Assembly (NCBI GenBank): GCA_015680685.1
Contig: MNCI01000406.1
Coordinates: 120,768 to 184,767, forward strand
Direction of reading: 5' to 3'
DNA: 64,000 bases
Source: Gnetum montanum
Lineage: Eukaryota; Plantae; Gnetophyta
A program made the translations under genes and the position numbers. Positions 5,316 to 45,900 of the stretch are shown here, one piece after another; positions within the stretch are counted from its first letter, which is position 1, and each line of letters opens with the position of its first letter. The notes beneath the pieces were generated by a model. The model did not search any database and was not told where the DNA came from. It worked only from the letters and a program-made list of their open reading frames with translations.

Positions 5316-5394
5316 GCAAGAAGCGACGCGGCCGCCATTCGGGGTTGATCCTAGCTTTGTGGACGGGAGCTGGGGGGCGCATAGCCCATCATCC

Positions 5395-5459
<65 letters not shown>

Positions 5460-6047: not shown

Positions 6048-6126
<79 letters not shown>

Positions 6127-6766: not shown

Positions 6767-7500
6767 TTTTTTTGTTGGAAAAAGATCAGGTAAAATTCAA
6801 TTAAAATTCAACATATGTACAGAAACAACCAAGATCGAAAAACTGAGGAGACCCCCCCTAGAAGGGGGCTCCCAAACCAACAACAATATAAAGCATCTTC
6901 AATGATCCACCAACCCTCACACCCCCCAGACCAACAGAGCAAATGAAACCAAGGGTGAGTAACCACACATATGGTAGGTCAACCCACCCCATAACCTAGA
7001 CAAATATAACTAACCACATACAAGCCAAGCCTTTCTCCACAAAGCAGGAAACAAAAAAACCAACCCCCTACATTTGGTGTGGTAGAGTGAAACATGGACA
7101 TCTAGGGTTCACTTTTGACCAAACTCAGTCTAGGATCCCCCATAAAGGTTTAAAGGCAACAAAGTTAGTAGCCTGCTGAAAGTCAAGGAAATCCTACTCC
7201 ACTTGTTGTCACTCATTGTCAAGTATATCGAATGGTATTTCACGACCGTTAATGGATATCTCGTCGTAGGGCAATCCATGATGCATCCTTATTAATGCCC
7301 ATAAGAATATACGGACAACAACATTTCCATAGCCATCGCTTAACCTCTACCTCATGCACCTAATCAAACCACTACTTCATTTGTTGTTCCTCAAATAACA
7401 CCCTGTCATCTTTCTCCTTTTCAGCTTCTTCACCCCTGACTTTCATCCGAGTCCGATTGTGTCTGAATCTATTGACGAAGCTCCTCTTCCTTTTCTTGCC
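6767..7500 (-). mobile_element. 5'-truncated LINE 3' end with coiled coil and degenerate J-domain
   Basis: KRWLWKCCCPYILMGINKDASWIALRRDIH..KYH..FQQATNFV...PRCPCFTLPHQM* (with frameshifts); T-run at about 6767. Confidence 0.7.
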
Positions 7501-15900: not shown

Positions 15901-18900
15901 GATTGCATACCCCCTGAGACAAACGCGGGGCCGTCTCGGGTTAAGTCACTTTTTTGCGATGCAACGACTTATTTTATTTCAGTTTTTATTGTGACTCTAG
16001 CTGACTACTTTAATTTCTGTGATACAAAATCCGGATGAAGATACAAGGCCTTCTGAGGGAGGGAACGATGGTGCAGAGGAAGATTCATAGCATGACAGCA
16101 AGGGATTTTATTTGAATTTTTGAAAGAATATTGTAAACATTATTTGATTGAGACTTTAAATGGAAAATGAACTATGACAAGATTCCCTTTATTTTGGCTT
16201 GTGTATTATCTATGTTATCTATCTTTATCTTTTTTTCTTTTTTTGTCTTAGTTTTAAGCCATTTCGGGCCATTGTTAGGTGATAAGAAAAAGAATTTTTT
16301 TTTATTTGTTTTTTGAATAGCCAGTTTTAGGCCTTGGCGGGCCGCAGTGGTAGTTTAAGGCCATTCCGGGCCATCGCTAGTTTTAGGCCATTTCAGGCCA
16401 TCGCCGAGACACGGGGTAAAGAATTTTTCCAGTTTTAGGCCTTAGCGGGCCATGGAATACACGAACGAACTACACGACACAAACAGTGTAAATAAAGAGG
16501 ACGTTAAAGCCAACGATGAATGTAAAGCAAACAGTGCAAGTGAGGAGAAGTATGCGTAAAGGGTAATGTAGCTACGCTAACATGGACACGGTTCAATTTT
16601 GGAGTTGCTTTTTGACCCATCATGGGTTCGGCGATGTATAAGGCCGAGGGGCCTTGTTGTGGTATTCCTCTACGCTATCGTCTGCCGTCTGAAATGGCAG
16701 TTCAAACCACGTTGTGACTTCGTTGGTACCAGTTTTAGCTTGTTCAGGCACCTTCGTTTGAACAAAGGGTTGTTCATCAGAGACTTCGATCTCTGAACCT
16801 TGCTCTACCCCCACATTGTTTATGGTCCGAGGAGCTACTTCATCACCGTGTATCACCACTTCCCCTCCCGCATAGGGCAAATGGATCTCTTGATGTATCG
16901 GCGATGAAACGGCCCTCAGTTGGGCCAACCACGATCTCCTCAGAATCAAGTTGAATCCTGACATCTCCTCTACCACTATGAATGTTGCATTTCTGGGGAA
17001 CTGGTCCCTTGCCACAAAGTTGATCTGCACAATCCCTTTTACTTGCACTCGTGCCCCATTAAACGATTTTATGCAGGATGTCGTTGTAGGCTTGATTTGA
17101 TCCACTAGGCCCAACTTGTCCACAATGGGAAAAGGGATGACATTGGTCGCAGCACCATCATCAATGTGTACTCTTCGGATCCTGTGTTGGCCGACCCAAA
17201 TTGTGATGAACATCGGTGCTGTTGTCACCTGACCCTTTTCAAGGTCGTCTTTAATGGATCCGTCACAAAATGTTAACTGAGCCGGCCTCGGTTTTTCAAA
17301 TGCAGGAGGGAGGATAACTGCGGGAATTGCCTTTTCCTCCACCGGTATGCTTTCGTCCACTAGTATGGATGTCAACATATGAACCAAGGCCTCACGGTGT
17401 GCGATAGAGGTCATTACCAGGCCGTACAAGCTCAAAGTTGTATTCTTCTGTTTCAGAGCCTGCTTGACTTGAGTAAGGGCGTTTAGCAGGTCTTGTCCGC
17501 TCTCCTATTGCTTGCTACCCTTCTCTTCCTCCATTCGTCCTAGGAGACGAATTTCCCGAGGAGGAGCGGTTTCAGGTTTGGGATTGGACCTTTTTGGGCG
17601 GGCCGGCGATGATTGCTTGGGCGTAGCAGCATCAGCTGTTGATGACGAGGGGGGCGAAGGCATGGAAGACGAGGAGGTAGGCTTAGGGGGACTTGAGGCA
17701 GTATGTTGTTTAGCCACCTTGTCCATCGGATGCTCTTCCCTAATCTTTGAACAGGAAGGCTGTGAGGTTGTCTTGGCTTGGCTATGTATGGTGGGGGCAG
17801 TTGAATGTTTCGGCCCCCTGATGATAAACGGTGTTTCTAGTGTCAGCGCAGGCGGCGGTGTGGTTTTAAACACGAAAGGTGCAAGGGCGGATGTCCGAGA
17901 GGGAACTTTAAGGACAAATGGTTGTTGCGGCAACTTTTTGGCCGCTGCTGGTCTCGGTGCACTACGCTGAGGCACGCGAACCACAAACGGTTGCTGAGGC
18001 GGTTCAGGATTACTGTCTACGCCAATGGTGTTGATGATGTAGCCGGCATTGTTGGCATTAAGTGGGTCTTTGTAAACGTGCATAGATTGATTCTCGGGGC
18101 GCACAGGGTTGCTTTCATCTAGAACCAACTTCCCCTGATCAATCATTCGTTGAATGTCATCCTTTAACGCTAAACAGTAATCTGTGTCATGACCACAAAG
18201 TTGACAGTAGTCACAAAACCGCTCCAGCCTGAAATTCTTAGGAACTGGCGGCTCGTTGGGCATAGCCAAAGAGGGCTTCCTAAGGAGCTCACAGTACCGT
18301 TGATGCCTTTTGGTGGCCTGCTCCAGGGAGACCTTGAGCTTGAAGATGGGCCATTCTTCACGAACTAGCTTAGGGATATAACGCTATTCAGGGGGGTCCG
18401 AATAAAACTTACGAAGGAGGCTATCACCTAATATATGAATGTTCCGGCAAAAGGGGAGGAGGTTCCCCTGCAAAGGAGGGGGTTACAAGATGTGCATGAC
18501 TTCTTCTCAGGACCTGTGCCCAAAACGGGAAGTGGGTAGGTGCCCAAGTTGACGTTGGAGCCCCTCTAGCAAGACACAATGGTACTTGTGGACCACTCCG
18601 TTCACTTCGGCAACACGTGGAAGTTGCTCAGAGTGCATTTCAATTTCATGCGAAGCTTTTGGCAAGGGTATAAGGTGAATTTTCCCTATTACTTTCTAAC
18701 TATCCTATGTCGACGACAAAGGGGGACACATTTGGGTCTCATCTCGGCTCTCTAGCGATCGACAAGGGGTGGTTGCCACCGAGGGCTATTTTTGTTAGGG
18801 CCGTATATGGGCAATGTAGGTTGTGGTGTGTTCCACCCACGATGGTGGACATTTCAATGGATTCAAGTGACTCAAATAAGGAGGAGCCTTTGGGAGCGAT

Positions 18901-21900
18901 TTATGGTAGGGGAGTTTCGAGGGGTGTCATGAGGGGGGAGTCATCGCAACCCCAAGACCAAACTACTTCTACAGAGGCTAAGCCTAAGGGGTGGCCAAAC
19001 CTAGGGGTGTGGAGTGGGGGTTGGCTAGGGAAGAGGCAGAGTCGATAGCAATGGAGCATGCCCAGGCAACGAAGTGTACTTTTTGGGAAGAAAGACTCAA
19101 GAAGCAGGAGTAGTTCCAACAATAGCTAGAACAGTTGACCCAAAGATACAAGGAGACGGCTAAGGAGGAAAGAATCTATCATGATCTGGAGAAAACAACA
19201 ACTCAGCCGGTTCTGGAAGAGGACCTCAAACATAGGCTAAGAGACAAGTTGTAGGAAGAGGCATGGATCTAGGGGGAGTAGGCAAGGGAGGAACAAGCGC
19301 ATAGGGGGGAGGAGGCACGAGAGGAGGCACAAATGCAATAGCAACTTGATCGGGCTCATATGAGCAACGTGCGCTCATGGCTCCAAATGGGGCGTTGCCC
19401 CTATGTCATCATGTATATTGGGCACAATGCACCCTGGGGAGCGCTCAAGAGGCATATCCGAAGGCATGGAAAGGAACTACACCTGGATGGAGAAGGAAAT
19501 GTGAATGTGCAAAAGAAAAGAAGCCATTTGAAAGGAATTCCAGCAAGCAGCAACTTTTGTTGACACTGAACGGCACAAAGCAATGTTGGATATCGTTCAT
19601 GGCCAACAAGGCAGCCTTTGTCATTGCACAAGGCTGCCATTCCATTTATAGATTAGGTTTTGGGGTGGAGCAGGGTGGGCTGTTTCTATTTCTGTTTCTG
19701 CTTTTGCTTTTGTGTTTTGGTTGTTGATTCTTTTTGAAGTTACATTGTGTAGGAGATACTGAGTTGCAGGGGCCAGGGGGTAGCCTTGCCAACTCAATTT
19801 TGTACTGGGGACAATGACGGGGGGATGTTTTGAAACCCCCCATCGCAGATTGGGGGTGGTTCTCATCTGGGGGGTGAGGGGAGGTCTCTCCCCTCGTTTT
19901 TGGGATCGGCTAACTGATATACATGATTTCTGATTTTGATTAATATATACCCGAGTTTTTCCCAAAAAAAAAATTTGCGGTGGCTGCTATATGCTGTTTA
20001 GTATAAGGGTAAAAAGTAAGATTTTTATTAATTATAATATTTAGAGTGTAATAATGTTATTTCTGGGCAACAGCAATTCTCAGTTTAGCATCATACTCAC
20101 CGGCAATATTGTTCCATATTTATTAATTAAAATTTCAAACTGCATATCAATAAGATCAGTTGTTTGGATGTGTTTGTTTAATGTTTCACACATTAAACGT
20201 CATGTCACTGTGCCAATTTAAACTGCTGCAAAAATTTTACACTAAATTTAGTGTCAGAACAGCACAAGTTATAGCTCTGGCTCATGATCTCTAGCCTTAT
20301 GTTTGAGCTGTGGACAACATACACAGCTATCATGGCCTTTAGTAGTGGATTTCTGATAAACAGTTTGAGCTCAGTAGCAGAATTACATTTCACAGTTCAA
20401 CATTGTGACATGACCTTGTACTCATTCTCTTAATACAGAGGTCTGTTTGTATTTTTTAAATTATCAGCCTGTAATGTTAAAAAGAGTTTACCATGTTTAT
20501 TAAAAAAATAGAAAAGATCAATATCAATTGAAAATATAGCCTGCTTTACAGCTTTTCCTGAAGTTTCCAATGTTGAACTTTTGCCGACACTGTTTAAACA
20601 TGGTTTCATGCTATTTAAAGATAAAAGAAATGGGAAAAAAGTAATGAGCATTCATGTTCTTTGATTTGCTCCAACACACTCATACATAGAGACAGGAGTA
20701 ACAATTTTCTTTTGTACTAGATCTTGAATGACTTCTTGAATGTGAAGGCTTTTCAGCCTCCTTAGACAATAATAATAATAATATGGTCCTCATCCTATCT
20801 CAGAAATGTAAAAACAAACCTTGAATTGAGTGCTATCTTCAACTTTCTGTCAGTCTGCTTGGGATCCATGATGGATGCATCCACCTCTACGGCCCCATTA
20901 TTAATATGTACAAACTGCAAAAGAGGGGCATTTCACATTATTTTTTGGCACAATCAACGTACTTTTAATAATGATGAAAATTTCTCCCAAGAGTACAATG
21001 AAATAAGATATTGAAACTTTGAAAAACATAATTGGAAAAGGGAAAAAATTATGAACCAAGCTTGGTACTGATAACTTAATTTAGCTCTGTAACTAGGATT
21101 TCCTATAGTTTTAAACTATTTGGGACAGTCCAGATTAAAAAGTCCTAAATCCTAAAGTATAGGTGTAGAAAAGCAAAAACTATTTCATAAATGACACAAC
21201 TTTCATGGTTTTACATGTATTGATATCAAGAAAGATCATGGATTGTTTTAAAAATCATTTTCTCCTTGTATGTACTTTTTTAAATTTTTCCAATTTTATG
21301 TCCAAATCAATTCATTTATTGTCCAATGTCTGCAATCTGATTTAATAGAAGGGCATCCAATTTTGCAATTCACTCTTACATTTATAACAATGATCATGAA
21401 CATTTGTACTATCATGTAGATCTAACATTTGAAGTTTGTACAAGCAATGTGAATGACTGTCACTATATTAAGAAATACTTATTAGCAATATGTTAATTAA
21501 GTCGGCCAATCTGCCAATAAATACCACATATGTAGAAATAACATCTCCAGCACAATGATATTGGTTTAATGCTCATACCAAATGCCACCACCAAAGACTT
21601 TTGCAGGTAAGATGCTGAATTTTTGTCATGTTTTCTATTCATTTGGACTGTGTGTGTGTGTCAATTTGTGGTTTCACACCAGTTTCAAAGCCAAGAATGT
21701 AACCAAGGGGTAATGGTGAATCCTTTGGGTCCGTTATTCAATTGATTATGAATTCCTCAATGGGATAGCTATGCATTAACATAATGTTTCGATTAGGTTT
21801 TGCAGCAATTTAGAAATACAAACTTTCAATTTTTATAGGCAGTTCCCTGACACACTAATGCATTAGATCAGGATATGAGGACTAGCTTCGATTAATATAA

Positions 21901-24900
21901 TTTGCATATTTTCTCCAAAAAATATCTAATAATTCTTTGTTTCCTGCAAGTTTCTAGCACGATGAATTTTCATGTTGTGTGTATTCCTCAAGTTGGAAGA
22001 CATGGATTTGAGCCTAGGCATAGACACTTGAAAAGGTTAGGCTTTTGCTCACCCACCAACACTCCCAGGACCCCACTTGATAGGATAAGCATTGAAACTC
22101 AAGGTGATGATCTTTTTTTAGATAGTTGTGAGTATGATTATCTATGTTTCACAAATCTTCAAGACATGGGCATTGGGACACCAGGGCATATCCTGAAATG
22201 CATTCAGGAACATGAGGGCTTTTTGGGGACATGCTAGGGTTACATTAGTGACACAAAGCTTGAAAGTAGTATCCATCTTGTAGAGCAAAAAATATAACTG
22301 TATGCGCAAATTGTTGATGTAAATATTCCAAGTTCTTGTAATGGGAGGAAAGAAATATACTACTGCTACTAGGGAAATATTATTATTTTTTGAATTATTG
22401 ACATTGTTTGGTCTCATTTTGAGTTTCGAATTTTTTTGCTTCTACAACTGCTAGGGACATCCCAGAATCTTGGGGATGTGGTCAACCCAATACATCCTCG
22501 AAGGTTTGGGGACGCATCCACATCCCAAGGACATCCCAGACATTAAAATTATATTGGGGACACATCTTTGCAGAACAATAATGATAATCAATACAGTGTT
22601 TCAACCATTTCCTATTGCCTTTGGATATTCTACATAACTTAGCACTATCTAAGCTTCTTATATCATGTTTCATTCGCTGAGCTATTATAAATGTTGTATA
22701 ACACATCAAATATAAAAGCAAAAATCAGAGGGAAAAAGTTCCCATTTGAATAAACATAAATGCAAGGTTGAATCAAAGCACAAATTGATAAACAATTCAG
22801 TAAGTGTCACCTCATCCAGTAGGCCTTCATATGTCAGTTGTGTACACATTGGAGTAACCATATCCACCTATAATTAACCATAGACACATGTGAGTTCCAT
22901 GTACCAAAGAGCTTCTCAAATCCCATTTCAGAATTGTTACAAATTTTTTCTCAAGATTATATTTCAGAACACATTGGCAGTGGATAATATGCAATACTCA
23001 TTATACAGAAGTTAAAATAAAAATAATAACAGGATGAGTAACTAAAGTAAAATAAACTAATAAGTCTAGTTAATTTGGTGGTAAAATTAAATAAACAGTG
23101 GATATAACAGTAGATAATATCAATTTAGGAAACTTTTGAAAAAGAGAGCTAAATATAACATATTGAATAAACATGAAACATGAGAAAAGCATAGAAATGC
23201 TTCCTAATTCCATTCTAATTACAGTTTCCCCTCTTAAGATTAAACCAAAATCAACAATTTCAGGTAATCACCATTCTAGAATTCAGACTAACTATTCCAT
23301 GACAAGTGAAATTGATAGTTGAAGAAACTGACTATCCTGCCATAGAATTCAGAAGTCGAATACCATATGTTTATTTTTAGTCACTGGTGATCTCCTGCAG
23401 AAAAGAATTTTCTTTCTGGAACCAACTATTAGCGTCTGACCAATATAAGTAACAAAGGAGGTGTTCTACACTATTTTAAACTTTTTCTCACCTTCTTTGT
23501 ATCAATGTAGGTCAATAGAATAATGCTTGTCTTTACAGTAGTATTTTTTATTGTGCAAGAGAAAAACTTCAAGATGTGTACTAGAGTATTCCTCTTTTCA
23601 AAGTCTTCTTCTTTTTTTTCGAGAAACTGTCAGGTAATGTATTAAAAAAAGAAATGTAAACTGTACAAAAACTACACATCTCTGGGAGTCCTCTCCCTAT
23701 CGTCAGTGACCTGTTCCAAAATCGAGACTAAACCACCATAGTCCCAAACATGCCCCCCATTGTTCATACAAAAACCCAGTATGGAGCCGTAGGGTCCCCC
23801 TACACTCCCACCGCTACCTATCCCTAGCCAAGACACAGAGCAAGCCCAACTATCGCAGGCAAAAACACCCAGTCACCAAAACGACCAAGAGGTTGTCTGA
23901 GAGAAACCGAACAAAACAGCAACCCAAGAACCCACCATGCCCATCAGATATGTCGAGGTAGCTGGGAGCATCTACATATGGGCCACAACTAGGAGTGAAT
24001 ATCATCAAGCATGTCGCGATGTTGCTCAGTATCAACAAAAGCTACATCCTATTGAAAATTTTTAAAGGCCTCCGCCTTAGGTACGCGTGCAGCCACATCA
24101 CCCCTGCCATCAAGGTGCATCTTAGTTGAAGTCCGTCTAATGAACTGCATGAGGCCCTACCACGACAATAAATGATTAATGTTCATTATAATGTAGGGGC
24201 ATTGCCCCTCATGCAGCCAGGTAATTGCATTCTGTTCATGTGCATGATCTTGTTGACGTTGAAGTTGCTCATCCTCCAAACATTCATTCTCTCATTGTAT
24301 TTCTACCACTTGTTCCTACGCCTGTCATTCCAGCTCTTCCTACTGGATTTCTGCCTTGAGCTGCTTACGGAGCACATCCTCCAAAGTGGCCATGGTCATC
24401 ACATCCTCCATTTCTTTCTACCTCAAAATGTCCTTAATCATGTCTTGGTGTTGTAGCTCTGCCTACAACAACTATCGCTGAAAGGCATGTTCTTGTGCTT
24501 GCCACTTGGCCTCCCAAGCTTCCCGCTCCTCATCGTGTGACCTTAAGGTGGACTCTTGCATGGCTCTTTCAAGCACCCTTTACTAATACTCTTGTTCCAA
24601 CCACTTTGCTTCCTCCTTATCGACCTTAGCCAGAGGTTGAAATGGCACATGTTGCCATTGGCCAGGCGAAATAGTCTGCCCAGCATTAGTCAGAGGACTA
24701 GCAAGCATCATCCCTAGCAGTCTATCTTGAGGCCACCCAATTGCAATATCCTCCCCCCGCTGCCAACAAACATAAATGGAGTTGCATGACCCCACCTACA
24801 CCCACGGCACAGGCTTAGGCCATGCAACCCATGACAACGCAAGAATAGCCACCAAGGGCCACGTCAACCACTTTCGCTGCAACAAAGCCAAGAAAAATTT

Positions 24901-27900
24901 AGGCATGTTAATCGGTCGCCCTAAGTGCAAGCATTTCAAAAATGTGAAATGAACCCCCTACAACTTCCACATGTTCCCAAACTAAATGAAGAACCTGTCA
25001 ATCAGTTCCACCATGTCCTACTAGAAAGGTGACAGCCAAGATTTGGGCATCTACCCACTCGCAATCCATGGCACAAGCCCAGGAAAAAAGGCCTCCACAT
25101 CTTGTAGGCCTCTACCCATAGGTACAACCACCTCCCCACCAACCTACACCCCAAGAATGTGTGTAATCACCTCCTTAATGAGGCCAATCCTCACCCCCTA
25201 GAAGGTATTGATGTCCATACGCCAATTGTCAAAGAAGGCCTCATCCTGCAAATCTAGGTCCCCCACCAACATCGGGAGGAAATCAGCCCAACCCACACGT
25301 GTGATGAGGCCCCATAGCTCCATCATCTCATGATATCTAGTGCAAGAGGGCTCATAAGTTGGCTTCACTCCCATGCTAATAGTAGCTTCCTACCACAACC
25401 TCAGACCAACCGCAGCCACTTGCATAGGCTGCGAAGGAGGTAAATTCCTGAAGACTAAATGGTTGTGGGACCCACCACAAGCACCAAAGAATGGCCATTA
25501 CTTTGGAGTCCCCATCAACCTTAACAGGTGAGGAGATGTCAACCGCCTACCAAGTGGCGATAGCAAAGGTGTAGTGATAGGTAGAGTGTCTCCGCGTTTC
25601 AATCCTCTGAAAACAAGATGGGCATCTTTCACCAACATTTAACCCTCATGTGGTTAATTCAACCCTCACCAAGAGTGCCCCATGATTTATAAGCCAAAGA
25701 AAAACCTTTAACTTCTCAAGTAGTCACCCATGCCAAATCAACATCCATCCCAACATTGTCAAATATTTATGTTGAATGATAAGGTGGGAAGGGGCCTCCA
25801 TCACACCCTAGTACATCATCCTCAAAGCATGATTACATAGTGACCTCCAAATCAATGAATCATTGCTCCCTACTATCAATTGTTGATACTTATTGTTCAT
25901 AATTCAGATCCACTGCACCTAGGCAGTTCCCGTTTGTATCAACCGATGCCAAAGCTTCTACTGGCCAAGCCTAATACCATCTTCAAAACGTAGGACACCA
26001 AGTCCACCCACCTCTTTAGGTCAAGCAATGATATCCCAATTAACCAAGTGTAGACAGTTGTCCCCTTTGCCCCCACACCAAATAAACCGATGGATAAGCT
26101 GATCCACCTTGGCCACTACATCCTTCGGCAAGAAGGCAACCAATGCCGTGAATACACCCTTTCTTGCTCAAAAACCTAGTCTAGTGTTCAATTCGGCTCT
26201 GCAGTTGCTAAATCAACTTCATCCACACATGCTTCTTGTTCTAGGCAAAAATAGGGAAGTCTAAATATGAGTCGTGCTCCATCCACGGAGTGACCCAACA
26301 CCTGCATAATATGACCCCTGATGTACCCCTTAGTATTCGTAAGATACAACGTCGACTTCGCCTTATTAATTTTGAGCCCAATCTCCCAGGGCATTCTATG
26401 CACAGCTCTATCCATCTCTAGCACCTGCAATACATATGCCTTGATAAAAAGAATGGTGTTGTCGGCGTAATGTTCTGCCAGGCAGTCCACTCCATCAATC
26501 CACAACCCACAAACCCCTTGCATCCAGTAGTAAGTTTGCAAAGTATCCATAACTAGGATAAACAAATAGGGAGACAGAGGGTCCCCTTGTTTAAGGCCCC
26601 TTCCCAACAAGGAAAATCCCTAAAGCTTACCCTCATGATCAAAAGAATAAGTTGTGAACTATTGAATATGAATACAAAGATAAACAAAATCAGGGCAGAA
26701 ACCTTTTTTTGTGTCATTATCTCCCTCAATGCATCCCAACTACCAATGTCATAGGCTTTAGCGATATCCAACTTGAAGCAAAGGCTAGGAAAATGAGTGA
26801 TGTAAAGGGAGTGCAGAATTTCTTGAAACAGAATAACCTGAACCTACAAAAATCAACCACTGACAAAACCAGCCTAGTTGTTACTCACTAGTGCTAGCAT
26901 GAGAGGAGCCAAGCACCGCACTAGCATCTTAGTAAACCGATGTAGTAATGTATTACAGACACCGATGGGACAAAATTGTGAGGAATTAGCGGGTGCCATG
27001 GTTTTTGGTATGAGCACGATTCTAGAACAATTAATCTCTCAATGGACTTGTCGCCATATGAGCATAACATTGAAGGTGTCCAACAAATTCCTACCCAGAA
27101 CATCAACAAACTCCCTAAAAAATTCAATAAGCCACCCATTTGGACCTAGAGCCTTTCCAAGCTTAAGGTTAGCAATGGCTGCCTCCAACTCCCCCCAAGT
27201 GAAAGGTGTGAGCAGCAAACCGTTAGCCTCCTGCGATAGCACTGGATGAATAGGGATCAAAAGAGGAAGCTGATCCCCCATGCCAGACATAAGCTAAGTA
27301 GGAGTGGAAAGCCTGAATGATGGCTTGAGGCTGCACCACCTCCATCTCGTCCTGGATAAGCCAAGTGACCTTTTCCAAAGAGTTGTTCGCCTTCACAGCT
27401 ACGAAGAAAAAAACATGTGGGCTGATCCCCTTCCTTAAGCCAAGTGTTTCTAGATCGCTGCCACCAAGAATCAACCTCCTCCTTATCAAGCCCCTACAAC
27501 TCCACTAGAAGCTATTGCTCCTCTAGCATAAGAGACTTCCCTACCTCTTGTCTTGCCTAAATTTCTAGCAACTTCTTGTGAAGAAGCTACCAGTGCATCC
27601 TAGAAGTGTACTTCTCCTCCTTCTTCTTAGACCAAATCTCCTTCTTCTTAGACCAAATCTCCTTCTTCAGGATATTAGCACCATTTTTAAGGAAGTCATG
27701 AGGGTCCCCCTCTGTAAAGTACTCATCCCAGATCCTAGACATAATTGGTCTTAACTAAATCTTCTAGAGCCCAATCCTCTCAAATTTGAACTAAGATGAA
27801 GTAGGGATTGGCTGATCCCAAACCTAACAAATCAGAGAGTGGTGGTCAAAAGCGTGTCGCTCTTTCCCCATGACCTAGACCTCTTGCTGCAACAGGAGTG

Positions 27901-30900
27901 TTGAGCTAACCCAAACTCTGTCAATACAAGACATGACCCAATCTCTGCCCTATCACCTATTGCTCCACATGAACAGGCAACCCCCAACATCCATATCCAC
28001 CAGATCATTCTATTGGAGAAAAGACATGAATTGCTCACTTCTCAAAGGAGAAGCAAGGTTGCCACCTATCTTTTCCCATGCATGTAGTCGTTGATTGAAA
28101 TCCCCAACCAGGATCCACCGCCATCAATTAGGAATGATGCCCGCAAGCTGCTGGAGCTCTATTAGCCATCCCTCCCAATCCTAAGCTCCATTGTAGTTTG
28201 TAAGCCAATATCTTTTAGAAGGCAGCCAAACTGAAATACTCCAGTCCAAGGAATCCAAAAGTGAAATGACACTTTGAAAAGAATGGCCAAACCACCCGCC
28301 CTACCACAGCTCGCCACCAGGTGCATTTGCCACCCATCCCAATGCAGTAGCCTAGATTCTCTTTGCTGCAACTTTGTTTCATGCAAACACACCACATCAC
28401 ATTGTTCTCTACATACAATCTCCTTCAGGGTTTGTCATTTATAGGGGGTAGCCTAACCTTTGTAATTCCAAGACATTATCTCCATGGTCTACTTGTAGAC
28501 TGCTTCCTATAGACCTCTTTCAAGGTCGATTGTATTCCAAAATCTATTTCCAGTTGCATCTACCTATTGCAAACCAATGACATAGGTGATTGACCAATCT
28601 TCCCAACTTCTACAAAGACCTAGAACCCCCATCCATCTCAATAGTTGGCATCCTTGCATTCATGAAGACCTAGAGCCCCCCGTCCATCTCAACAGTTGGT
28701 AGGGGCACCTCCCTCAAGCTAGATTTAGTGAAACCACACACCATCGACACCCATCCCCAAGCAAGGGAAACTCTTTCCCACTTGCAATCCAAAGGCATGG
28801 AGAAACCCTCCTCTAGTAATATCCTAGGACTCATCGGCGACGACATCATGGAACCCCCCACCAAGTTCACACCCTCATGTTGGCCCTCGAAATCAACAAC
28901 ACTAGGAACACTCGAAGGCCTTGTGGCCCCCTGTGCTAGTTCTGCACTGGTCCCAGGCCCAAGCACCCCTTGGTGTCCCTATGGCCATGACACTTAACTT
29001 TTGTCCACCCATCCTTTTTAGCAAGGTGTTTGCTTTTATTTGACATGCCACCCGTAAGATGCCTAGGCTTCCCACAGACCATGCAATAATGTTGACTTGC
29101 AACAAGTATCGCCAAATCTATATCGTTCAAAAGGTTCTCATACTCCACTTGGGTATGCTCCTCCCCCGAAGGAAGATCCAAAATGACCTCTTTGACTAGG
29201 TCCTTTGGGGAAAGGGGCCACCAAACACAGAATCTAGCAAAACCCATATGTTCCATCGAAGAGGTGTATTTATCCAAGGCAATGAATTCACCGAAAAAAG
29301 CCACCAAGGACTTCAAGAAGGTTAGTGTCCAAAGCTCCAAAGGAACACCTGAAGCCCTATTCCAAATTGGTGCCTGAGAGAAAAGGTTAGTGTCCCTATG
29401 TGCCCTTGGCCGCCAAGGCATCAAGGCTAGGCCTCTGCACCAAAGAACCACAAACCCCTAGGGAGCACCCGATTCCTATCTTCAATACACTAAAACATAA
29501 AGAAAAAGAGATCTTCAATGAGGCTCCACACGTTGATATTTCCCAAATTCCATGTGGCAACAGCCCACTTCTAGATAAGTTCCATCTTTGGGTGCATGCC
29601 ACTCAACACAAAGTGACCACCCAAGCTTCGCTCAACTATACTAATGCCCTCTAAAGGAAGCTGTGTAACCTCCAATCTCAAGGATCCCTCAGCCCAAGAA
29701 GCTTTCCCAAAAACACTAGGTGCTCCATAATGTTTTTTATTAAAGATGTAGGAAAAGCTTAGTGCCTACTATAATTTTTAGAACCCCAAGGTCAATCATT
29801 GAAGACCAAAAGAGTTGAAGCATAACTTCATTTGATGTAAAAACAATGGAATCAAATGTTTGCAAATGTATAGCAGGAAGATATCTGTAGGCCCTAAGAA
29901 AACAAGAGTTTGGAACTCTTCTTTGCCTCTCTATTCTCCATATTTAACCAATCCATCCCTCAACTAATTATCTAGAACAGCTCCATAGTCCTTGCTGGTG
30001 ATCTCATTATTCAAATAATTCAAGGGCTAGCAAAGCAAGTCAAGATGTTACAAACAGAAATGGAAGGCAACACTATCCAACCGATAGACCTTTTCAAAGA
30101 TGATCCAACTAACACTTCAATACCACCAATTAGTTTTCCAAAAGGGCTTATCGTTTTGATTTTCACCAAGTGCAATGAAAGAGACAATCCAAACAATTAT
30201 CTTGTTATAAACAGGAATGCATGCTTAGTGTTGCATCCTATGTCACAAGCTATACTGTGTGTCTTCCCTACATTATAAACCGGCAAAGCGTAGGACTGGT
30301 ATCAAAGCTTACCTCATGGATCAATTTTGAGTCCAAAAGAAGTCACTAATCTTTTTGCCAATAGGTTTTATTACAGCATTCACAAAGACACTATGCTTAA
30401 CAATTTATCACAAGTAATCAAGCACTCAATAAGTGAATAGATACAATTGTCCTTAATAAATTGCCATAACCTCTTCACAAAAAACGTCTGCCCACTTTGT
30501 TTAATAATGTAGTCAATTACTTTATTAAGTCAAGATTTTCCTATGTCATATCTCAAAAATTAAATCATGATATCATTAACGAAAATAATAAGCCCCAAGA
30601 TCAAAAAGAAAATGATGAGCATGCTGCTACCACGTCCATAGTGAAACTGAAATATCAAAGTACATCAAGTCAAACATTCTTTCAAAATCAACAGCAATGA
30701 CAAGGAAAAACCAGCTCCAAAACTAAGATCATATGATATTTGACCCTTGTACATTCTTCGTAATTTCCCTCATCTTTTCATTAAGGTTAAAAAATACCAA
30801 AAGTGAGAAGAATTTCAAAAAGATTTTCATTTTCTTTCATTTCTTTTGAGTCATCTTCTTGAACATGAAATGTTTAAAATTACCCAAAAATATTTGCTAA

Positions 30901-33900
30901 ATTCAAATTATAAGAAAAAAATAAACTATAAGAAAATAAATTCAATCAATGGGCTTATTGATTAGCTAATATCTATGTCTTCATTCAATTAAAAGGAATC
31001 AATTATCAATTGAAGATATTGAGAGCAATGAAACAAACAAACTTGTCAGTGTGTGATCAATAAACATAGTAAGATTTTAAGGTTGTCACATTACATATGT
31101 CAATGTATGTATACATCTATCTTACAGCATCACTAATGCAACCAGTACCAGGCAAAGAAACAAGGTGAGAATCAAAGTTCTTACATCAGCCCACTCTATT
31201 CATCAATTTCCAAACAGAAGGCAGGTGGTGAATAATTAGTAAGATAATGGTTGAAATTAACCTAGTCCAATAGATCCATAGGATCTCCACATAGACATAA
31301 CAAAAGCAATTCAGTTTCAATTTCATAAATAGCAATCATCAATCAATTAATAAACAAGCCAATGAAACAATCACGCAGTCAAGAGATGGAACAGTCAAGA
31401 TCATTCTTCTTGATGACTGATTCCCATCATCCCCATGAACCTTTCATCACGTTGTTTATGAAACTCAAACCTAGGTTTACAGTAATCCCAGAAAAAATTT
31501 CTTTCCATTTCTTCTGTATTTTTAAATTGGTTGTTATTTATTTAAAAAAAACTGAAATCACTAAACTGAAAGATTTGTATCGTATGCACTTACAACTAAG
31601 TCATCTCCTTAAAGAGTGGCTTAGCTTCAAAGAGTGCATTCCTGTATCTTTGAATTTTATGCAGTTCATCGAACCTATCTGGCTATTACCATTGCTTAAA
31701 AATGCATTAAACTGTCATTTATCTTTCCTATAATTGAGCTATTTTTTTATCATATTACTGCAAAGATTACAACGTTTCTTTTTATCTGGACCACACTATT
31801 TTTCTGGTGTGCAATTGTAGTTTATTTAGATCATAGTCATAAAGTTCATATCAATTTTCTAAGCTACTCTTACAATAGTACTATCTATCTGCCTCGTACT
31901 ATTAAAGATCATAATGCTTTTCTTCCTTACAGTTACAATCATCCTGTCTTTTTGGATCATATTATTAAAGATACTATTGCATTTACTGTTAAGTCATTTT
32001 ATCTCAAAATTCTGGTCATCTTGATCCATCACTAATTTCTAAAGATATTAATCAAATACAACATATGTAGTTAACAAGATCCTTCTTCAATTTCAACTGT
32101 AAGACCATTCAAGGCTACTTAATTTACATGATGAAGTATGATATGGAACTACAAAATTGAATCATTAGTCACTATATTTTTGAAAAAAATATTAAATACA
32201 ATCTATAAGGTTAACAAAAGTCCTCCTTCAACTATAAGTGTGAAACCATTCAAAAATGCTTTATTCCCAAATCCATACAGGTACGAAACATAGCCAGGAA
32301 ATTTTCAACACTACAGGTAGGACCAACTTCCAAATTTATGGTGACTTTGGCATAACATATAATAAGCCTTGATCATTTACCTTGCAGCATTCTTCTCATG
32401 TTTCTTCAAGTACTTGCCATTTCTCTAATTTTGTCTTAATTTTTAGTACTCTTTGCTACAGCACTGCAGTTGAAAGAAATTAAGAGTGGAAAACCTTAAA
32501 TATAAACCTTCCACATTGCTTAAAATCTTTAGTGAGGGAAATAGGACAGAAGTAACACAAAATATATGAAATGCAATTTCAATAACAGCATAAACAGTGG
32601 TAAAATAGAAGTGACAATTCAAGGCCAAAAGGTCTCACAACGCACAAGTCACTCACTATAAACAAGTCCGCTAGATAGGATCAATCCTCCAATCATATGG
32701 TGAAAATGATAAAGATATAAGATATAGAATTGAGCCAGGATGGTCAAAATGGAGACATGCTAGTAGTCTTATATGTGATAAAAGAACACTAATAAAACTA
32801 AAGGGAAAATTTTATAACACAACAATCAAGCCTACCATTTTATATGGTGTTGAATGTTGGGCAGTACAAAAGAGGCATGAACAACAAATTAGTATGACAA
32901 AAATGTGAACGCTTAGATGGATGTTGAATGTTACCAAAGATATAAACTACATAATACAAATAGATATTAGAGGAAGACTTTTTTTTTTTTTTTTTGAGAA
33001 AATATTCAGGATTATATTACTGANNNNNNNNNNNNNNNNNNNNNNNNNNNNNNNNNNNNNNNNNNNNNNNNNNNNNNNNNNNNNNNNNNNNNNNNNNNNN
33101 NNNNNNNNNNNNNNNNNNNNNNNNNNNNNNNNNNNNNNNNNNNNNNNNNNNNNNNNNNNNNNNNNNNNNNNNNNNNNNNNNNNNNNNNNNNNNNNNNNNN
33201 NNNNNNNNNNNNNNNNNNNNNNNNNNNNNNNNNNNNNNNNNNNNNNNNNNNNNNNNNNNNNNNNNNNNNNNNNNNNNNNNTGGAGAAGATCCAGGGTGTT
33301 TCGGTGGTCTTCGGTGTCCATGAAACTGGCCGCCTGCTGGATACCCTGCATGGCCGACTCCTGCCTGTTCCGGTCCGCCGGCGAGGCACCCCCATCAGGA
33401 TGAAATCGCACCGAGGTTCGACGGATATGGCACCTGAGCTCACCCCAAGAGCTCTCGCAACTAATGCCAAGGATGAGGTACGGGCACCGCCCCCCTCTGA
33501 GCCACTGTCGGGCATTGTGCTCGTGAGCCCGATCGAGCTGCCGTTGCCATTGCTCCTCCTCCTCCTGAAATCGTTCCTACTCCGCCCGCTCTGCTTGCAC
33601 ATGTTCTCTTTGGGCCGCGTCCTCTTGAATCAGTTATAGAAAGACTTGGAGTACCTTCTATTTAAAATAAGTTATAGAAATGGAAGTTTAGAAGTTTTGG
33701 GCATGTGTAAAGAAGATAAGACAATGAGCCTATAAAAAAAGGTTATTACATCACTATTCTAGCAAAGCCACCAAAAGCAAGACCAAAAAAGATACAAAAA
33801 AAATGATCGAAGATGATTTGAAGAAACTACGAATAAACAAAGATCTAACTCTTCATAGAGGTAAATGGTGAAAAAGAACTCATATAGTAAACCCCATTTT

Positions 33901-39900: not shown

Positions 39901-42900
39901 TTTATGGCAGCCTTCTTGCATGGTGATTTTGATGAAAAGATATAAATGCAACAGCCTAAAGGATTTATAGATTAAAAATACCCAAATCTAGTGTGTAGGT
40001 GAATAGGAGTCTGTAGAGCCTGAAACAAGCTCTCAGACAGTGGTATAAGAAGTTTGATGTATTTATGAACAAGCTAAAATATAACAGAAGCAATTTTGAC
40101 CCCTGTATTTTTAAGGTAGTATGAAAGATAAGTTTTGAATTTTGCTGCTTTATGTTGATGACATGTTTATTGCTAGGAGATAAAATGATTAAAATTAAAA
40201 ATGGGAAAAGATTTGCAATGAAGGATTTGGGACCAACAAGGAAAATTCTTGGCATGAAAATTGAAAGGAATAGAAAGAGAAAGTTATTGTTGTTAAGTCA
40301 AGAAGAACACGTTTCCAAAGTGTTGGACAGGTTTGGTATGTCTAATGCAAATGTTTGTTGTGACTTGTTTTTTTTTTTTAATAATGATCGAGTATTATAC
40401 CTCAAAAAAATGTATGTGCAATAGCAAAAACGTCCAAGGACCCTTACTCCATCCAAGGAGTATGCCCAAGACAATGCCACCATCTCCCAAAATCCCCAAT
40501 ACCAAAATCTTCCTACCAAAGCCAAACCCTACAATCCCCTAAATGTTAAGAACAAAAGGCCATCTCGGGTCCTAACCATGGTTCTGCAAAAGTCAAGACC
40601 CATCACACCAAGAAAACCCATGCAACCCCATCCCCCCAGCTCAGTGTCATGAAACATTAATCATGTGTCCCATCCCCTGAAGCAACCCTAGTATCCACTG
40701 TAGTGTCTTGAACAGCCACAACCTTCAACGCCATCTCTGTCTAAAGCTCCCTTCTCACTTCCTCTTCCAATTTGAACCTCAGCTCCCATCTGTAGGCTTG
40801 TTCCAACCTTTGCCTCCTATGCTCACTCATTTGTTGCAGTTCTGCACGTTGTTGCTCAGCAAGGTATGCAATCCCCCAAACATCTTCTTCCCACTGCCTC
40901 CAACTCACTTCCCACTAAGCCCTCCCCTCAGCTCTGGCATTGTCGATGGCAACCTTACTTACCTTCTCAATCATCTCTTGGACCACCTCCAGTGTCGCAA
41001 GAGTCGTCCAACTCCCCAGCTCCTGCCTTTTCCTCAAATCAGTTGGTCCTATCCCCATCCTAGAAGCAGGGCGCTCCTACCTCTCCTATCCCGATGTCGA
41101 TGCATGCACTTCCAACGCAACCCTTATCCATCTTCAAAAATACACCCACATGAACAGTTTGCTTCCCTCAATCACCACCAACATCCTGCATCTCCACAAC
41201 GCAAGAATCAACCTCAGGTAACACCCCTTCCTCTTTCGCTTCAAGCAATCCAGCAAAAACCTCAGAAAATTCACCTACAGTCCATATTTCAGACATCACA
41301 GCAACACAAAGTGCATGCCCAATAGCTTATGTGCACATCCAAACTACACAAAATAACAACCAATAAGCACTACCGCTACCTGCCAAATTCAGGGCAATGC
41401 CAACTTCCTAATGTGCCCGCTAGCCATTCTAGGCACCCTTCCTTGGAAGAACTCCACGACAAATCTTTGAGAATGTAACGTAGGTGCTATGACTTCCTCC
41501 CCCTGCAGCAGTCCTAACACCGCTGCCATAGCTAACTCCGTAAGCCAAATTCTCAGTCCCCGGAAAATAGTTTCTTCCCCATGCGAATTAGCAAAAAAGG
41601 TTTCATCAACAACCCTCGGCTCCCCGACAATTGTGTGCAACATCCCTACCCATCCGACACGCTCAACAAGCTGCCAAAGCTCCATGTTGTCTTTAAACTC
41701 CTTGGGGGCCGGGTCATACCACTGTGCTACCCCATGCTAGTCGTGGCTTCCTCCCACAATCGCAGGCCCACCCTCATAGCCTCCACCAACACAAGCAACC
41801 GGGACCCCCTAAACACCAAATTATTTCAGCATTTCCAGGCCCCCCACAACACTAACAGCTCTTTAGAATCACAAAATAACTCAAAGTGGGCAAATCAGGC
41901 TTATCGCAATGTCGCACTTCCTAAGCATGCCCCTAACCACCAACGCTTTGTGCTTAATTACCAAAGCGAAAGCCTTAAGTTTTTCAGGCAACCACCCTTT
42001 CCAAATCTTCTACCATCTCTGATCTGGAGGATACATGACTCTGGTGAGCTCTGTAGGATCATGTCCCAAAAGCCCCTGCTCTATCATCTCATGTGCATGC
42101 TTGCATACATTCCTCCAAAGCTATGAACTCCCAACATCTGCCTCCCACATCTGATATTTCTGCCTTAACATCTTGATCCATTATATGCTTGTCTCTCACC
42201 CTGCCTAAGAAGTCTATTCGTCAATCTCTGCAACCCCAACTTAATCTCATCTTTAAAAGATAGAGTGCTGATCCCCCCAGCATTTCTAGGTCTTGCAACA
42301 TTTTCCCAACAGATCAAATGCATCTTTAGGCCACCCTTCCCCCAAGACCATATAAACCAACAAATGATCTCATCAATTTCTTGTGTTGCCCCAGCCGACG
42401 GAGCCACCATAGAAGCGGTGAACCACGCAATTACCATCAACACTGTTGATGTTAATAACATCTTACCCTTTCTCGAAAGGAACTTATTCACCCAACCTTT
42501 AGTTTTTTGCTGCAATCGTTGTATCAATCTCTTCTAGGTCTGCTGTCAGTGCCAACCAAAAAAGGGGATGCTCAAATACAAGTCATTATGGAGTCCTAGC
42601 AAAATTCCCAAAGCTTGTGAAATCCTCCCCTTAACCTAGTCCACCATGTTGACCATATAAAGCACCAATTTAGCTTTATTTATCTCCAATCCCACTTCAA
42701 GACCTAACTTCATCAGGGCCCTCTAAAGCACCACAACTTGCAGCATGGCCGCTCACGCAAAAAGGACTATGCCATCTACATGATGTTGGATTAAGCACTG
42801 CACCCCTGCAATTTCCACACCTCCCATTCCCTTAGCTGCACAGTATTGCTACAACAAGTCCATCATTAGAATGAACGGTAACGGAGATAACGAATCCCCT

Positions 42901-45900
42901 TGTCATAGCCCCCTCCCAATCCCATGAAAACCCCAAAATTTGCCATCAATATCAAACACATATCTACCGGAGCTTTGTAAATGTATGCAAAGCTTAACAA
43001 ATTCTACCCTGAAACCCTAACAAATCATTACCTCCCCCAGTGCCTCCCAACTAACAGTGTCTTAGGCTTTGGTGATGTCTAATTTGACGCACATCCTAGG
43101 GAAGCCCACACTCCCGAACGAATGTACTATTTCTTGTAGTAGAAGCACTTGATCCTAGAGATACCAACCTACCACGAAACCCGTCTGATTCTCCCCCACC
43201 AATTTCAGCATCAACAAGGCCAACCATTGCACAAGCATCTTAGTAAAAAGCTACAACAGGGTGTTGCAGACCTTGATCAACTGAAAGTGTGTCGAAGATG
43301 AAAGGCAAGGAACCTTCGAAATAAGAACAATACAAGAGTAATTAAGTTCCTTACGAACCTACTACCACTTTAGCATGTTGTTAAAGGCATCAAGAAGGTT
43401 CCCCTTGAGAACATCTGCAAACTCCTTGAAGAATTCTATTGGCCACCCATCAGGACCCAAGGCCTTATTGAGCTTCATCAACTGCATAGCTACATCCAGC
43501 TCCTGTCTCGAAAAAGGCTTTAGTAATGCCATGTTCTCAACAACCCCTAGCACTTGCTGAATTGGCAGTTAAATCTTCTGCGTATCACGACACTGCCAAA
43601 TATTTGTCTAGTATTTCTCAATCGCCTCCACCACTAAACTAGTGCCCCCCATCTGTGCGTCCTCCAGCGCCAAATGTAACTTTTGTTTCGCATGTCCATT
43701 CCCCTCTGCCATAGCAAAGAAAAACTACATATTGCGGTCCCCCTCCCTCAACCAATTCACATGCGCCCGTTGATGCCAATAACCTTCCTCTTCCAGATCA
43801 AGCTCTTGTAAACCCTACAACACCCCATTTTCCTTGTGTGTTAGATCCACCCCATTTTCTTGGCACCCCTAGATTTCCCGTAGTCTGTTTTGCAACTGCA
43901 AACAATAGGCTCTAAAACTACACTTGTCCTCAAAGGCCTTTTCCCTAATCCATTGTTTGAGGGTGCGCAGTCCTTGTTTCAAGAACTCTCTGGGATCCTG
44001 AGCCTGCACATATTCATACTAGATGTCCTAAACCAATGGTTGTAGCCATGCCTTTCCCAACCACATGTGTTCAAAACGGAATAGTCTAGGGAAAGACCTT
44101 CCTAACTACTCCAAATGACAAACAAGTCATCGATGATCAAACGCCTATCGTTCACACCCCACTACTTGAATATCAAGTTCAAGCACCACCATCCTCATAC
44201 CAACCCACACCCTATCAATCTGCGATTGGACCCCATCCTTCCCTTTCCTTCAATTACTCCAGGTGTACTAACAACCTGCAATCTCCAAGTCCACCAGCTC
44301 CTATTCCCGTAGAAACTCCATACATTTCAACCCCCTCAAGAGATCCGAGGTTTCCACTCCCGTCTTTTCCCATGAAAATAATCGTTGATTGAAATCCCCA
44401 ATCAACATCCAATGATGCTTATTAGAAACAACCCTCCCCAAATGCCACAGCTCTAACACTCGCACCTCCCAATTTTGGGCACCGTAGACATTGGTCAGCT
44501 AGAGATTTTCCTATATCACGTGCACGAGCTAGCTCCATTGCGACTCATCAATCAACGTGAACTTCAACTATGAAAGGATAGCAAGCCCACCAACCCTTCC
44601 TCAGCAAGGCACCATAAACTACCATCCCTTCCAATCCAACAAGCCATATTGCATTCAACTTCGTTTGTTGCAAGCAAATAACTTTACACCCTTCACTTCG
44701 CACAATCTTCTTTAAGGTATTTCTTTTGTAGGGGGTACCCTGTCCCCTGCAATTCCATGAGAGCAACATCAAATGACCCGACGATCATCGTTGGTAGACC
44801 TCTTTCAAGGTCCTCTACAAGCCCAAATCAATATCAAACTGTGTTTGCTTTTTCCTCACAATCTATGCCCCCAAGCGCATCATGGAATATCTTTCATTAG
44901 AGGTTTGCCTGATCCTTTGGCCACTTCAATCCAACTTCCCCATAGTGGGCACCCCCCTTCTGACGAACCTGTGCCTTCAACCCCCACCTTTAGCATGAAC
45001 AACATTGACTCGCCATGGGCAACCTCCCGTAGCGCATCCTGCTACTCCACCGGCAATGCTTGCTTCTACTCTGCCTCTAGGGTCTCCTTCTACTCCGCCT
45101 GTGATTCCGGCAACAGAACCAGCTCCACCACTTACACCTCCTACATCTCTGGCACAGCCTAGCCCTTCTTAATTCTGAACCAACCTAATTGTGCAAGCTG
45201 CACCATTGAGGTCAGCCCTTTCAACTTCTTGGTGCAGGCTTTGTAGTCTGCTGCCCAATGCCCTGCTTTGCCACATTTTGTGCATCCAATCCTCTTAACA
45301 ATCAAGGGTTGCACCACCCCAAAATTTGCATATTCAATCCAAATTTTTTCTGCTCCAAAGGGAAGGTCCAACGTAACCTCACTCACAAGCTCCTTTGAGG
45401 ATAGCGACCTCCAAATGCAGAAACGTGCAAAACCCATCCTCTCCATTGAGTGCGTGAAGGCATCAAACATGATGAAATCCCGAAAACCCCCCACAAATGT
45501 TTCTAGGAACTCCGGATTCCACCATTCCCATGGTATCCCCGTAGCTCAGATCCACACCAGCCCCCGATAATACAAGTCCTCACAATGGGCACCTGGTTGC
45601 CACTTGGTTAGGGCCAACCCCCGTGCCCTGTAGAACCACGAACCCCCCACCATGATCCAATCCTAATCCTCCACTATGCAGAAAGTGAAGAGTAGAAACT
45701 CCTCAATCAAACATCGCACCCCAACATTTGTCAGCCCCCTAGTATTCTATGCCCACTATTTGATCAAGTCCAAGAGAGGACACACTCCACTCAACACAAA
45801 TTTCCCAATAAGGCTAAGTTCCATCCTTCTGACACCCGCATCCAATGGCTTGCACACCTTCAAGGTCACGTTCCCACCCTACCTGGAGATTTCATCCAAA

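Follow-up and report, generated by a model that had tools for sequence, protein, structure and literature searches.

A predicted C-terminal J-domain in ORF2 of a plant L1-clade LINE lineage

Extra domains are rare in LINE ORF2 proteins, the RNase H of some plant elements and the helicase of insect R1 being examples. The 64,000-nucleotide stretch of Gnetum montanum DNA analyzed here (the window) raises the question of whether a LINE lineage has acquired a domain of quite another kind, since the original prediction held that ORF2 of a near-complete L1 in it ends in a J-domain. In our best explanation, this L1 is a dead member of an abundant plant L1-clade lineage in which ORF2 runs past its zf-RVT region into a conserved domain (domain X), a charged linker and a J-domain, the last of which would serve for Hsp70 docking in active elements. 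We consider this account probable.

The dead L1 and its relatives in the window

The main element, copy E, lies on the minus strand and is composed of the following pieces.

23590-29733 (ends approximate), minus: near full-length dead plant L1, from Pfam pieces and collinear tblastn
28939-29457, minus: ORF1 fragment with DUF4283, then a CCHC-like knuckle (PF14111, E 1.5e-11)
28165-28434, minus: putative ORF2 endonuclease fragment of 90 aa (PF03372, weak at E 0.026)
26191-26619, minus: reverse transcriptase fragment (PF00078, E 1.3e-8)
25475-26128, minus: RT thumb and zf-RVT region, identified through its homology to copy A
24586-25389, minus: domain X, post-zf-RVT, ~270 aa, assigned by amino acid conservation in copies A, D, E and G
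24220-24579, minus: charged linker, a putative long helix or coiled coil, assigned by composition
24004-24201, minus: predicted J-domain from alignments, 66 aa, HLD (codons CAC CTT GAT), two in-frame stops
23944-24003, minus: 19-codon Cys/His tail, C-x-C-x2-L-P-x-H, with the terminal stop
23590-23943, minus: 3' UTR and A-rich tail ending TTTCTC-G-A8

Decay of copy E is severe: stops and frameshifts are numerous in both ORF1 and ORF2. Its pieces match Pfam DUF4283, Exo_endo_phos and RVT_1, copies A and G are collinear with it in tblastn, and its endonuclease region is homologous to copy G at 44307-44428. The RT thumb and zf-RVT region aligns by tblastn to residues 4-223 of the 203-1384 ORF of copy A (joint E 2.5e-52). 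Among annotated proteins, plant L1 RT/zf-RVT proteins come nearest (~30% identity), and a homologue search with the 394-aa ORF of copy A returned only two weak zf-RVT hits. The one candidate for a target-site duplication around copy E is weak, gapped and ambiguous. A hairpin is present in the 3' UTR and is not significant relative to shuffled sequences; the 64-kb window has no Rfam match. Six other copies complete the picture.

203-1384, plus: copy A, an intact ORF of 394 aa that spans the RT end and zf-RVT (572-796) and enters domain X; it is followed by an N gap (1471-2147), then the 3' UTR and poly(A) at ~2290
5622-5879, plus: copy B, stop-free, predicted J-domain with HPD (5622-5819; Pfam DnaJ E 4.3e-5), tail and stop
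7068-7455, minus: copy C, old, 5'-truncated and frameshifted, with the linker end, a J-like module (7128-7317), tail and stop
18252-19975, plus: copy D, 5'-truncated, with domain X (18252-18929), linker (19021-19383), predicted J-domain with HLD (19396-19591), stop (19649-19651) and poly(A) at ~19966
33283-33576, minus: copy F, 5'-truncated and stop-free, with the linker end and a predicted J-domain with HPD (33289-33486), running into an N gap (33024-33280)
40370-45700, minus: copy G, a related J-less L1 in which domain X and a charged linker are present and the 3' end is different

The J-like module had been predicted to recur at four LINE 3' ends besides that of copy E, and all five modules were indeed found in place. 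Each lies ~320 nt upstream of poly(A), with a shared TTTCTC-type terminal motif, and three of the copies are 5'-truncated; six copies (A, B, C, D, F and G) clearly show poly(A) and 5' truncation. The terminal stop and the length of the tail are the same in copies B, C, D and E. Copy G belongs to a J-less sister lineage. The region around copy B (5470-6040) is flanked by two poly-C runs of 70-85 nt containing N, which look like assembly artefacts.

Two copies, with support from a third, connect the module to the reverse transcriptase, as the original prediction had proposed. In copy A, zf-RVT (Pfam E 4.6e-17) continues into domain X with zero stops between them. In copy E, the frame from the codon starting at 25299 to the stop at 23944-23946 spans domain X, the E/Q/R/K-rich linker and the J-domain over ~450 codons, with stops inside but zero frameshifts, so that the anticipated coding run beyond zf-RVT to a J-like end occupies one frame. 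Copy D is collinear with the same order of domain X, linker and J-domain. Because the 64-kb window has no uninterrupted ORF from endonuclease to J-domain, the fusion was pieced together from these three copies. The J module is part of the LINE element itself.

A different arrangement would be a separate third ORF, made up of linker and J-domain or of domain X, linker and J-domain, whose product is a small J-protein acting in trans. Consistent with this arrangement, every copy has stops between domain X, linker and J-domain, including a double stop in copy E at 24580-24585, between domain X and linker, and the frame changes between domain X and linker in copy D. However, the junction of zf-RVT and domain X in copy A is open, the three parts share a frame in copy E, and stops fall at different places in copies D, E and G, as random decay predicts. 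Neither a conserved start codon nor an intergenic spacer is visible. We thus regard a third ORF as unlikely, and prefer the reading in which a single ORF2 extends to the J-domain.

Domain X, the linker and the predicted J-domain

In the correct frame, the domain X sequences of copies A, D, E and G share 38-48% of their amino acids; shifted frames score much lower, and differences are far more frequent at synonymous than at nonsynonymous sites (pS 0.69-0.85 versus pN 0.33-0.43). Eight pieces from the four copies had no Pfam match up to E 10, an atlas search gave zero named clusters, and an AF2 model (pLDDT 50) was unusable. The suggestion that this middle domain is ATHILA-like thus found no backing; given the empty Pfam and atlas searches, kinship to ATHILA ORF1, plant-mobile-domain (PMD) or Transposase_28-like domains is unproven, not disproved. 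Domain X is in its own right a conserved 270-aa domain absent from protein databases. The linker that follows contains 42% E/Q/R/K and 0% Pro/Gly over 120 codons, and the linker of copy D has the same composition.

The claim that the final module is a J-domain was borne out by profile matches, a reverse profile search, language-model features and a predicted fold, all of which agree. The Pfam DnaJ profile (PF00226) matches copy F with 25.8 bits (E 1.1e-5) and copy B with 24.0 bits (E 4.3e-5), over profile positions 2-63 of 63. The expected Pfam match was therefore found over the full profile at E values of about 1e-5, but both scores, which come from sequences of dead copies, fall just under the gathering score of 27.8 bits. 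In the reverse direction, a profile built from the copies was searched against 1.84e9 proteins; its best hits have E ~1e-4, with no close cellular relative among them, and 9 of the 10 hits tested carry PF00226 at E 1e-19 to 1e-33. The same profile hit 37 PDB entries at E up to 1, every one a J protein, and DnaJ accounts for 25 of the 30 nearest ESM-Atlas clusters. An AF2 model of copy B from a family-only alignment (pLDDT 69, a moderate confidence) has the four-helix J topology, with helices at residues 8-12, 20-32, 42-62 and 65-78 and the HPD at residues 35-37, in the helix II-III loop directly after helix II. Foldseek with this model returned almost only J-domains from the PDB (best 2ctp, probability 1.00, TM 0.52/0.58), in line with what had been proposed; the E-values are weak, none better than 0.02, which is common for helical domains of 70 aa. 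By sequence signature and predicted fold, then, we assign the module as a J-domain, C-terminal and of class C type.

Within this assignment the copies differ at the HPD motif. HPD is present only in copies B and F (CAC CCG GAC and CAT CCT GAT), and copies D and E have HLD, each separated from HPD by one C-to-T change in a CG or CHG context. The HLD form would disable a J-domain. For the main element, the prediction of a J motif accordingly holds in that a J-like module is in place, but its motif is HLD rather than HPD and three in-frame stops lie within J-domain plus tail. Helix II is basic in copies B and F (R24, R25, H26, R28 and R29 of the model), and I-R-R occurs in all copies. Other features of the sequence are atypical, namely C-P-Y in place of D-Y-Y at helix I and S-W in the helix I-II loop.

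Selection on the module and its abundance

The original prediction also held that divergent copies retain the module under selection, and the substitution pattern bears this out. Copies B and F differ at 44 of 210 bases, distributed 9, 10 and 25 over the three codon positions (omega 0.15; Fisher 1e-8). In a permutation that keeps the mutational spectrum, 28.2 +/- 2.5 amino acid changes are expected and 14 are observed, with none of 20,000 trials as conservative. Family-wide, third positions account for 10 of the 15 best-supported variant sites, and among the best-supported variants the HPD codons have no major alternative. The four copies that share their stop position have only ~40% amino acid identity. 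These comparisons show that purifying selection acted on the J module in several diverged sublineages.

Selection of this kind could also have preserved a descendant of a J-domain that no longer drives Hsp70, kept for a structural or dimerization role like that of Pam16/Tim16-type pseudo-J proteins, or for some other task, with the Cys/His tail binding RNA or a partner, for example. The atypical helix I and loop sequences, the scores under the Pfam gathering threshold and the HLD of two copies are what such a history would leave, and the conserved C-x-C...H tail together with an N-terminal Cys suggests an added metal site. Nevertheless, the two least decayed copies still have HPD, the best-supported family variants include no major alternative at those codons, the basic face of helix II (R24, R25, R28 and R29 of the model) is kept, and purifying selection is strong over the whole J-domain. 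A role detached from Hsp70 is in our view quite unlikely, and we retain the interpretation of a J-domain that would be functional in active elements. A passenger origin of the module, from a processed host DnaJ pseudogene or a 3' transduction that one master copy spread as non-coding sequence, is highly improbable, as is a chance resemblance to J, even though LINEs do transduce 3' flanks and an intact protein is absent from the record. It is rejected because non-coding sequence would not show an omega of 0.15, a third-position excess and a positionally conserved stop, and because the module lies upstream, not downstream, of the 3' UTR and terminal motif that belong to the family itself, with five independent comparisons pointing to J-domains only.

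The lineage is abundant. In each of two species, ~3,500 contigs carry the module, and 1,027 and 675 oligo-dT RNA reads cover it. Family members are transcribed, and the RNA reads may derive from read-through or from intronic copies. No intact protein is on record, since a search of 15 billion predicted proteins turned up no family member; likewise, the J profile found no protein fusing RT and J among 1.84e9 proteins. Gene calling probably misses TE ORFs on short repeat contigs, so that an empty search of this kind is not proof of absence. A metagenome scan with copy F found no match.

Proposed role and comparison with known systems

If our interpretation is correct, ORF2 of this lineage would be ordered as zf-RVT, domain X, a long charged helical linker, the J-domain and a Cys/His tail. 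The J-domain would have been added after domain X and the linker, both of which also occur in the J-less sister lineage. In active elements, the HPD loop and the basic helix II would bind cytosolic or nuclear Hsp70 of the host and set off its ATP hydrolysis beside the ORF2 protein, so that the element's own protein or RNP would receive Hsp70 in cis. One possibility is that the loaded Hsp70 helps to fold the very long ORF2p. Alternatively, before target-primed reverse transcription begins, it could remodel the RNP or free it, for example from granules or from a coat of ORF1p. The original prediction also considered disassembly of host silencing complexes as a putative role. Recruitment of Hsp70 by the module is inferred. 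Hsp70 on L1 RNPs is itself a known theme, because complexes captured with human ORF2p contain HSPA8 and HSPA1A (PMC5821459).

As had been anticipated, no prior description of a J-domain tail on a LINE was found in the literature searched. On balance we lean toward the view that, in a plant genus, an L1 lineage with thousands of copies encodes an Hsp70 co-chaperone module of its own at the C-terminus of ORF2p; it would be the first retrotransposon known to have J-domain-driven recruitment of Hsp70 built in. Should this be true, a recruiter that the LINE carries itself, in thousands of copies and under purifying selection, would argue that Hsp70 loading limits LINE propagation. Chaperone capture would be a selectable step in LINE mobility, and the lineage would offer a natural system for asking what Hsp70 does for LINE RNPs.

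The element resembles other plant L1-clade LINEs, with which it shares an ORF1 with DUF4283, RVT_1 and zf-RVT, a poly(A) tail and frequent 5' truncation, along with a putative EN of the APE type. Some plant L1s carry an RNase H after zf-RVT; here, in contrast, a module of ~480 aa (domain X, linker, J-domain and Cys/His tail) replaces the ORF end or RNase H. Polyomavirus T antigens, which are class-C-like J proteins, have a J-domain within a multifunctional replication protein and harness host Hsp70 with it. They too are a case of a selfish element encoding its own J-domain as a module of a larger protein, but there the J-domain is N-terminal and belongs to an animal DNA virus, whereas here it is C-terminal and belongs to a plant retrotransposon polymerase. 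Among cellular proteins, the closest parallel is with class C (type III) J proteins, which likewise have HPD, lack the G/F region, the DnaJ zinc finger and DnaJ_C, and carry the J-domain away from the N-terminus; the plant module differs in being attached to EN-RT, in a helix I that starts C-P-Y and in its C-x-C-x2-[LF]-P-x-H tail.

Human L1 ORF2p co-purifies Hsp70s, and we know of no recruiter for them. The human association of Hsp70 with ORF2p (PMC5821459) would thus have a counterpart here, although in the human case the recruiter is unknown or consists of host factors, while here the element itself would carry it. Insect R1 LINEs have added a C-terminal SF1 helicase domain to ORF2 (PMC4686597), and so provide a precedent for an extra, non-canonical enzymatic or regulatory domain at the same end of the protein. 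These elements, however, belong to the site-specific R1 clade and carry a virus-like helicase, whereas the module described here is of the cellular co-chaperone type. The J-domain would represent a new class of LINE acquisition: a switch acting on the main chaperone of the host, neither a nucleic-acid enzyme nor a binding domain.

Architecture of the LINE copies and linkage of the J module

The main element of the window (copy E) is a decayed plant L1-type LINE, recognized by Pfam matches on its pieces and by its collinearity with two other L1 copies. The pieces comprise an ORF1 with DUF4283 (E 1.5e-11), a putative endonuclease with a weak Exo_endo_phos match (E 0.026) and a reverse transcriptase with RVT_1 (E 1.3e-8). 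The copy is dead, carrying many stops and several frameshifts. From 25299 to a stop at 23944-23946 it keeps to one frame, with stops present and no frameshifts, and this frame encodes four parts in order: a domain that follows zf-RVT, is conserved and spans about 270 aa (domain X), a charged linker of 120 codons (42% E/Q/R/K, Pro and Gly being absent), a 66-aa J-like domain and a 19-codon Cys/His tail. Downstream of the tail stop lie a 330-nt 3' UTR and then an A-rich tail. The original prediction placed the same J module at four further sites in the window, and copies B, C, D and F were located exactly there. The analysis compares natural copies, with in-frame stops passed over or translated as X:

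1-2300, plus strand: copy A, further L1 copy with an intact 394-aa ORF, zf-RVT into domain X
5622-5879, plus strand: copy B, J module, stop-free, with the His-Pro-Asp (HPD) tripeptide of J-domains
7068-7455, minus strand: copy C, J module, old and frameshifted
18252-19975, plus strand: copy D, with domain X, linker, J, stop, UTR and poly(A) collinear
23590-29733, minus strand: copy E, decayed plant L1-type LINE
33283-33576, minus strand: copy F, J module, stop-free, with HPD, interrupted by an N gap
40370-45700, minus strand: copy G, near full-length related L1 with RT, domain X and charged linker, without a J-domain

Truncation at the 5' end, which is usual for LINE copies, affects copies B, C, D and F, and no single copy in the window holds the whole ORF uninterrupted. 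The J module is tied to the LINE by three links, each shown by one or more copies. RT/zf-RVT is joined to domain X in copy A, where the 394-aa ORF runs from zf-RVT (E 4.6e-17) into domain X with no intervening stop. Domain X is joined through the linker to J in one frame in copy E and by order in copy D, and J is joined to the UTR and poly(A) in every copy. A TTTCTC-type terminus followed by poly(A) is common to copies A, B, D and E.

The shared terminus of the J-bearing copies, of TTTCTC / TTTTCCC plus poly(A) type, was seen at 2160-2300 (+), 19830-19975 (+), 23612-23750 (-) and 6815-6950 (-). About 100-130 nt upstream of it lies a short G-run/C-run hairpin whose arms vary between copies while complementarity is kept; folding z-scores for this hairpin were not significant. 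Poly-C runs of 70-85 nt with one N each flank copy B on both sides (5391-5467 and 6041-6126), and N gaps interrupt copy A (1471-2147) and copy F (33024-33280). Both the runs and the gaps probably arose in assembly or gap filling, so the local context of copy B is not trustworthy.

Copy G is a J-less sister lineage. It shares the RT (48-57% at the amino-acid level), domain X and a charged linker; its frame stops after the linker and is followed by a different 3' end, and no J motif was found in it in any frame. This suggests either that the J-domain was the latest addition, made once domain X and the linker were in place, or that the copy G lineage lost it.

Two other elements were noted in the window. 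A 221-aa stop-free piece at 3620-4282 (+) has RT-like motifs (the blocks F-D-V-x-x-L-Y-P-S-I-P and F-I-D-D) and no Pfam match; it may belong to a divergent retroelement outside L1, possibly one of the Penelope-like kind. A Copia LTR retrotransposon at 48293-53355 (-) retains gag, SH3-like and RVT_2 pieces between LTRs of about 220 bp that are 93-97% identical.

Identity of the J-domain and its terminal tail

Copies F and B align to the Pfam DnaJ profile (PF00226) across positions 2-63 of its 63 (E 1.1e-5 and 4.3e-5, respectively), with scores 2-4 bits below the gathering score. A profile of the window's copies gave only 11 matches among 1.84 billion representative proteins, and nine of the ten tested were true PF00226 proteins with an N-terminal J-domain. 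All 37 PDB chains matched by the same profile at E up to 1 are J proteins, and DnaJ accounts for 25 of the 30 clusters nearest to copy B in language-model features. An AlphaFold2 model (pLDDT 69), for which the input alignment consisted of the window's copies only, predicts four helices, at 8-12, 20-32, 42-62 and 65-78, and places the HPD at 35-37 directly after a basic helix II. In a Foldseek search of the PDB with this model nearly all matches were J-domains (probability up to 1.00, TM about 0.5-0.6); their E-values are weak, as expected because the domain is so small. Copies D and E carry HLD in place of HPD, which looks like post-insertion decay, since a single C-to-T change at a CG or CHG site would turn a Pro codon into the CTG and CTT present there.

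Copies B, C, D and E agree in the position of the terminal stop. In four copies the tail is exactly 19 codons followed by a stop (23944-24003 (-), 5820-5879 (+), 19592-19651 (+) and 7068-7127 (-)) and contains the motif C-x-C-x2-[L/F]-P-x-H. This motif could form a small metal site with the conserved Cys that immediately precedes helix I; model confidence is low over the tail.

Selective constraint, abundance and transcription

The J module has not evolved neutrally, in keeping with the selection originally proposed for it. Aligned without gaps over 210 bases, copies B and F share 79% identity, their 44 differences fall 9/10/25 at codon positions 1/2/3, and the Nei-Gojobori omega is 0.15 (Fisher p 1e-8). 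Random re-placement of the B/F substitutions, with the base and CpG context of each site kept, gives an expectation of 28.2 +/- 2.5 amino-acid changes and roughly one stop. The real pair has 14 changes and no stop, a degree of conservation reached in 0 of 20,000 trials. Remoter copy pairs (35-43% amino-acid identity) have saturated synonymous and unsaturated non-synonymous sites, and weigh less because their alignments were protein-guided. For domain X, too, conservation between copies A, D, E and G is confined to the correct frame.

Public sequencing data were matched to copy F at 80% likeness. About 3,500 contigs matched in each of two DNA runs representing two species, and 1,027 and 675 reads matched in two oligo-dT RNA runs from the window's species. 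Among variant sites that recur across the family within the J frame, 10 of the 15 with the best support are third positions, and three odd residues of copy F proved private, the majority letter there giving the copy B residue. Family members are thus transcribed, from which expression of an intact element does not follow. Immediately upstream of copy F, the AT-rich sequence at 33697-33760 is a separate, very high-copy repeat; its contig word depth exceeds 20,000 in two species, and RNA reads contain it as well.

A possible role for the J-domain and comparison with known systems

By analogy with known J-domains, we infer that ATP-bound Hsp70 would be contacted at its nucleotide-binding domain and linker by the HPD loop together with basic helix II. 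Hydrolysis would be triggered, and Hsp70 would be clamped onto whatever adjoins the J-domain. Since the domain closes ORF2p and follows a long, presumably rigid linker, it would direct the loading of host Hsp70 in cis, either to ORF2p or to its RNP. One plausible pay-off would be help in folding a polymerase that is very long and has many domains; another, also plausible, would be RNP remodelling and release ahead of target-primed reverse transcription. Human ORF2p complexes contain HSPA8 and HSPA1A (PMC5821459).

A full-text literature search found no description of a J-domain in any retrotransposon, and no relative of the module combining RT and J was found among the 1.84 billion representatives of predicted proteins searched. 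Viral J-domains occur in polyomavirus T antigens. The backbone of the element is that of an ordinary plant L1, and in some plant L1s RNase H is a C-terminal addition to ORF2. The ORF2 of insect R1 has likewise gained a C-terminal SF1 helicase (PMC4686597). Both additions are precedents for the gain of a C-terminal domain by a LINE ORF2.
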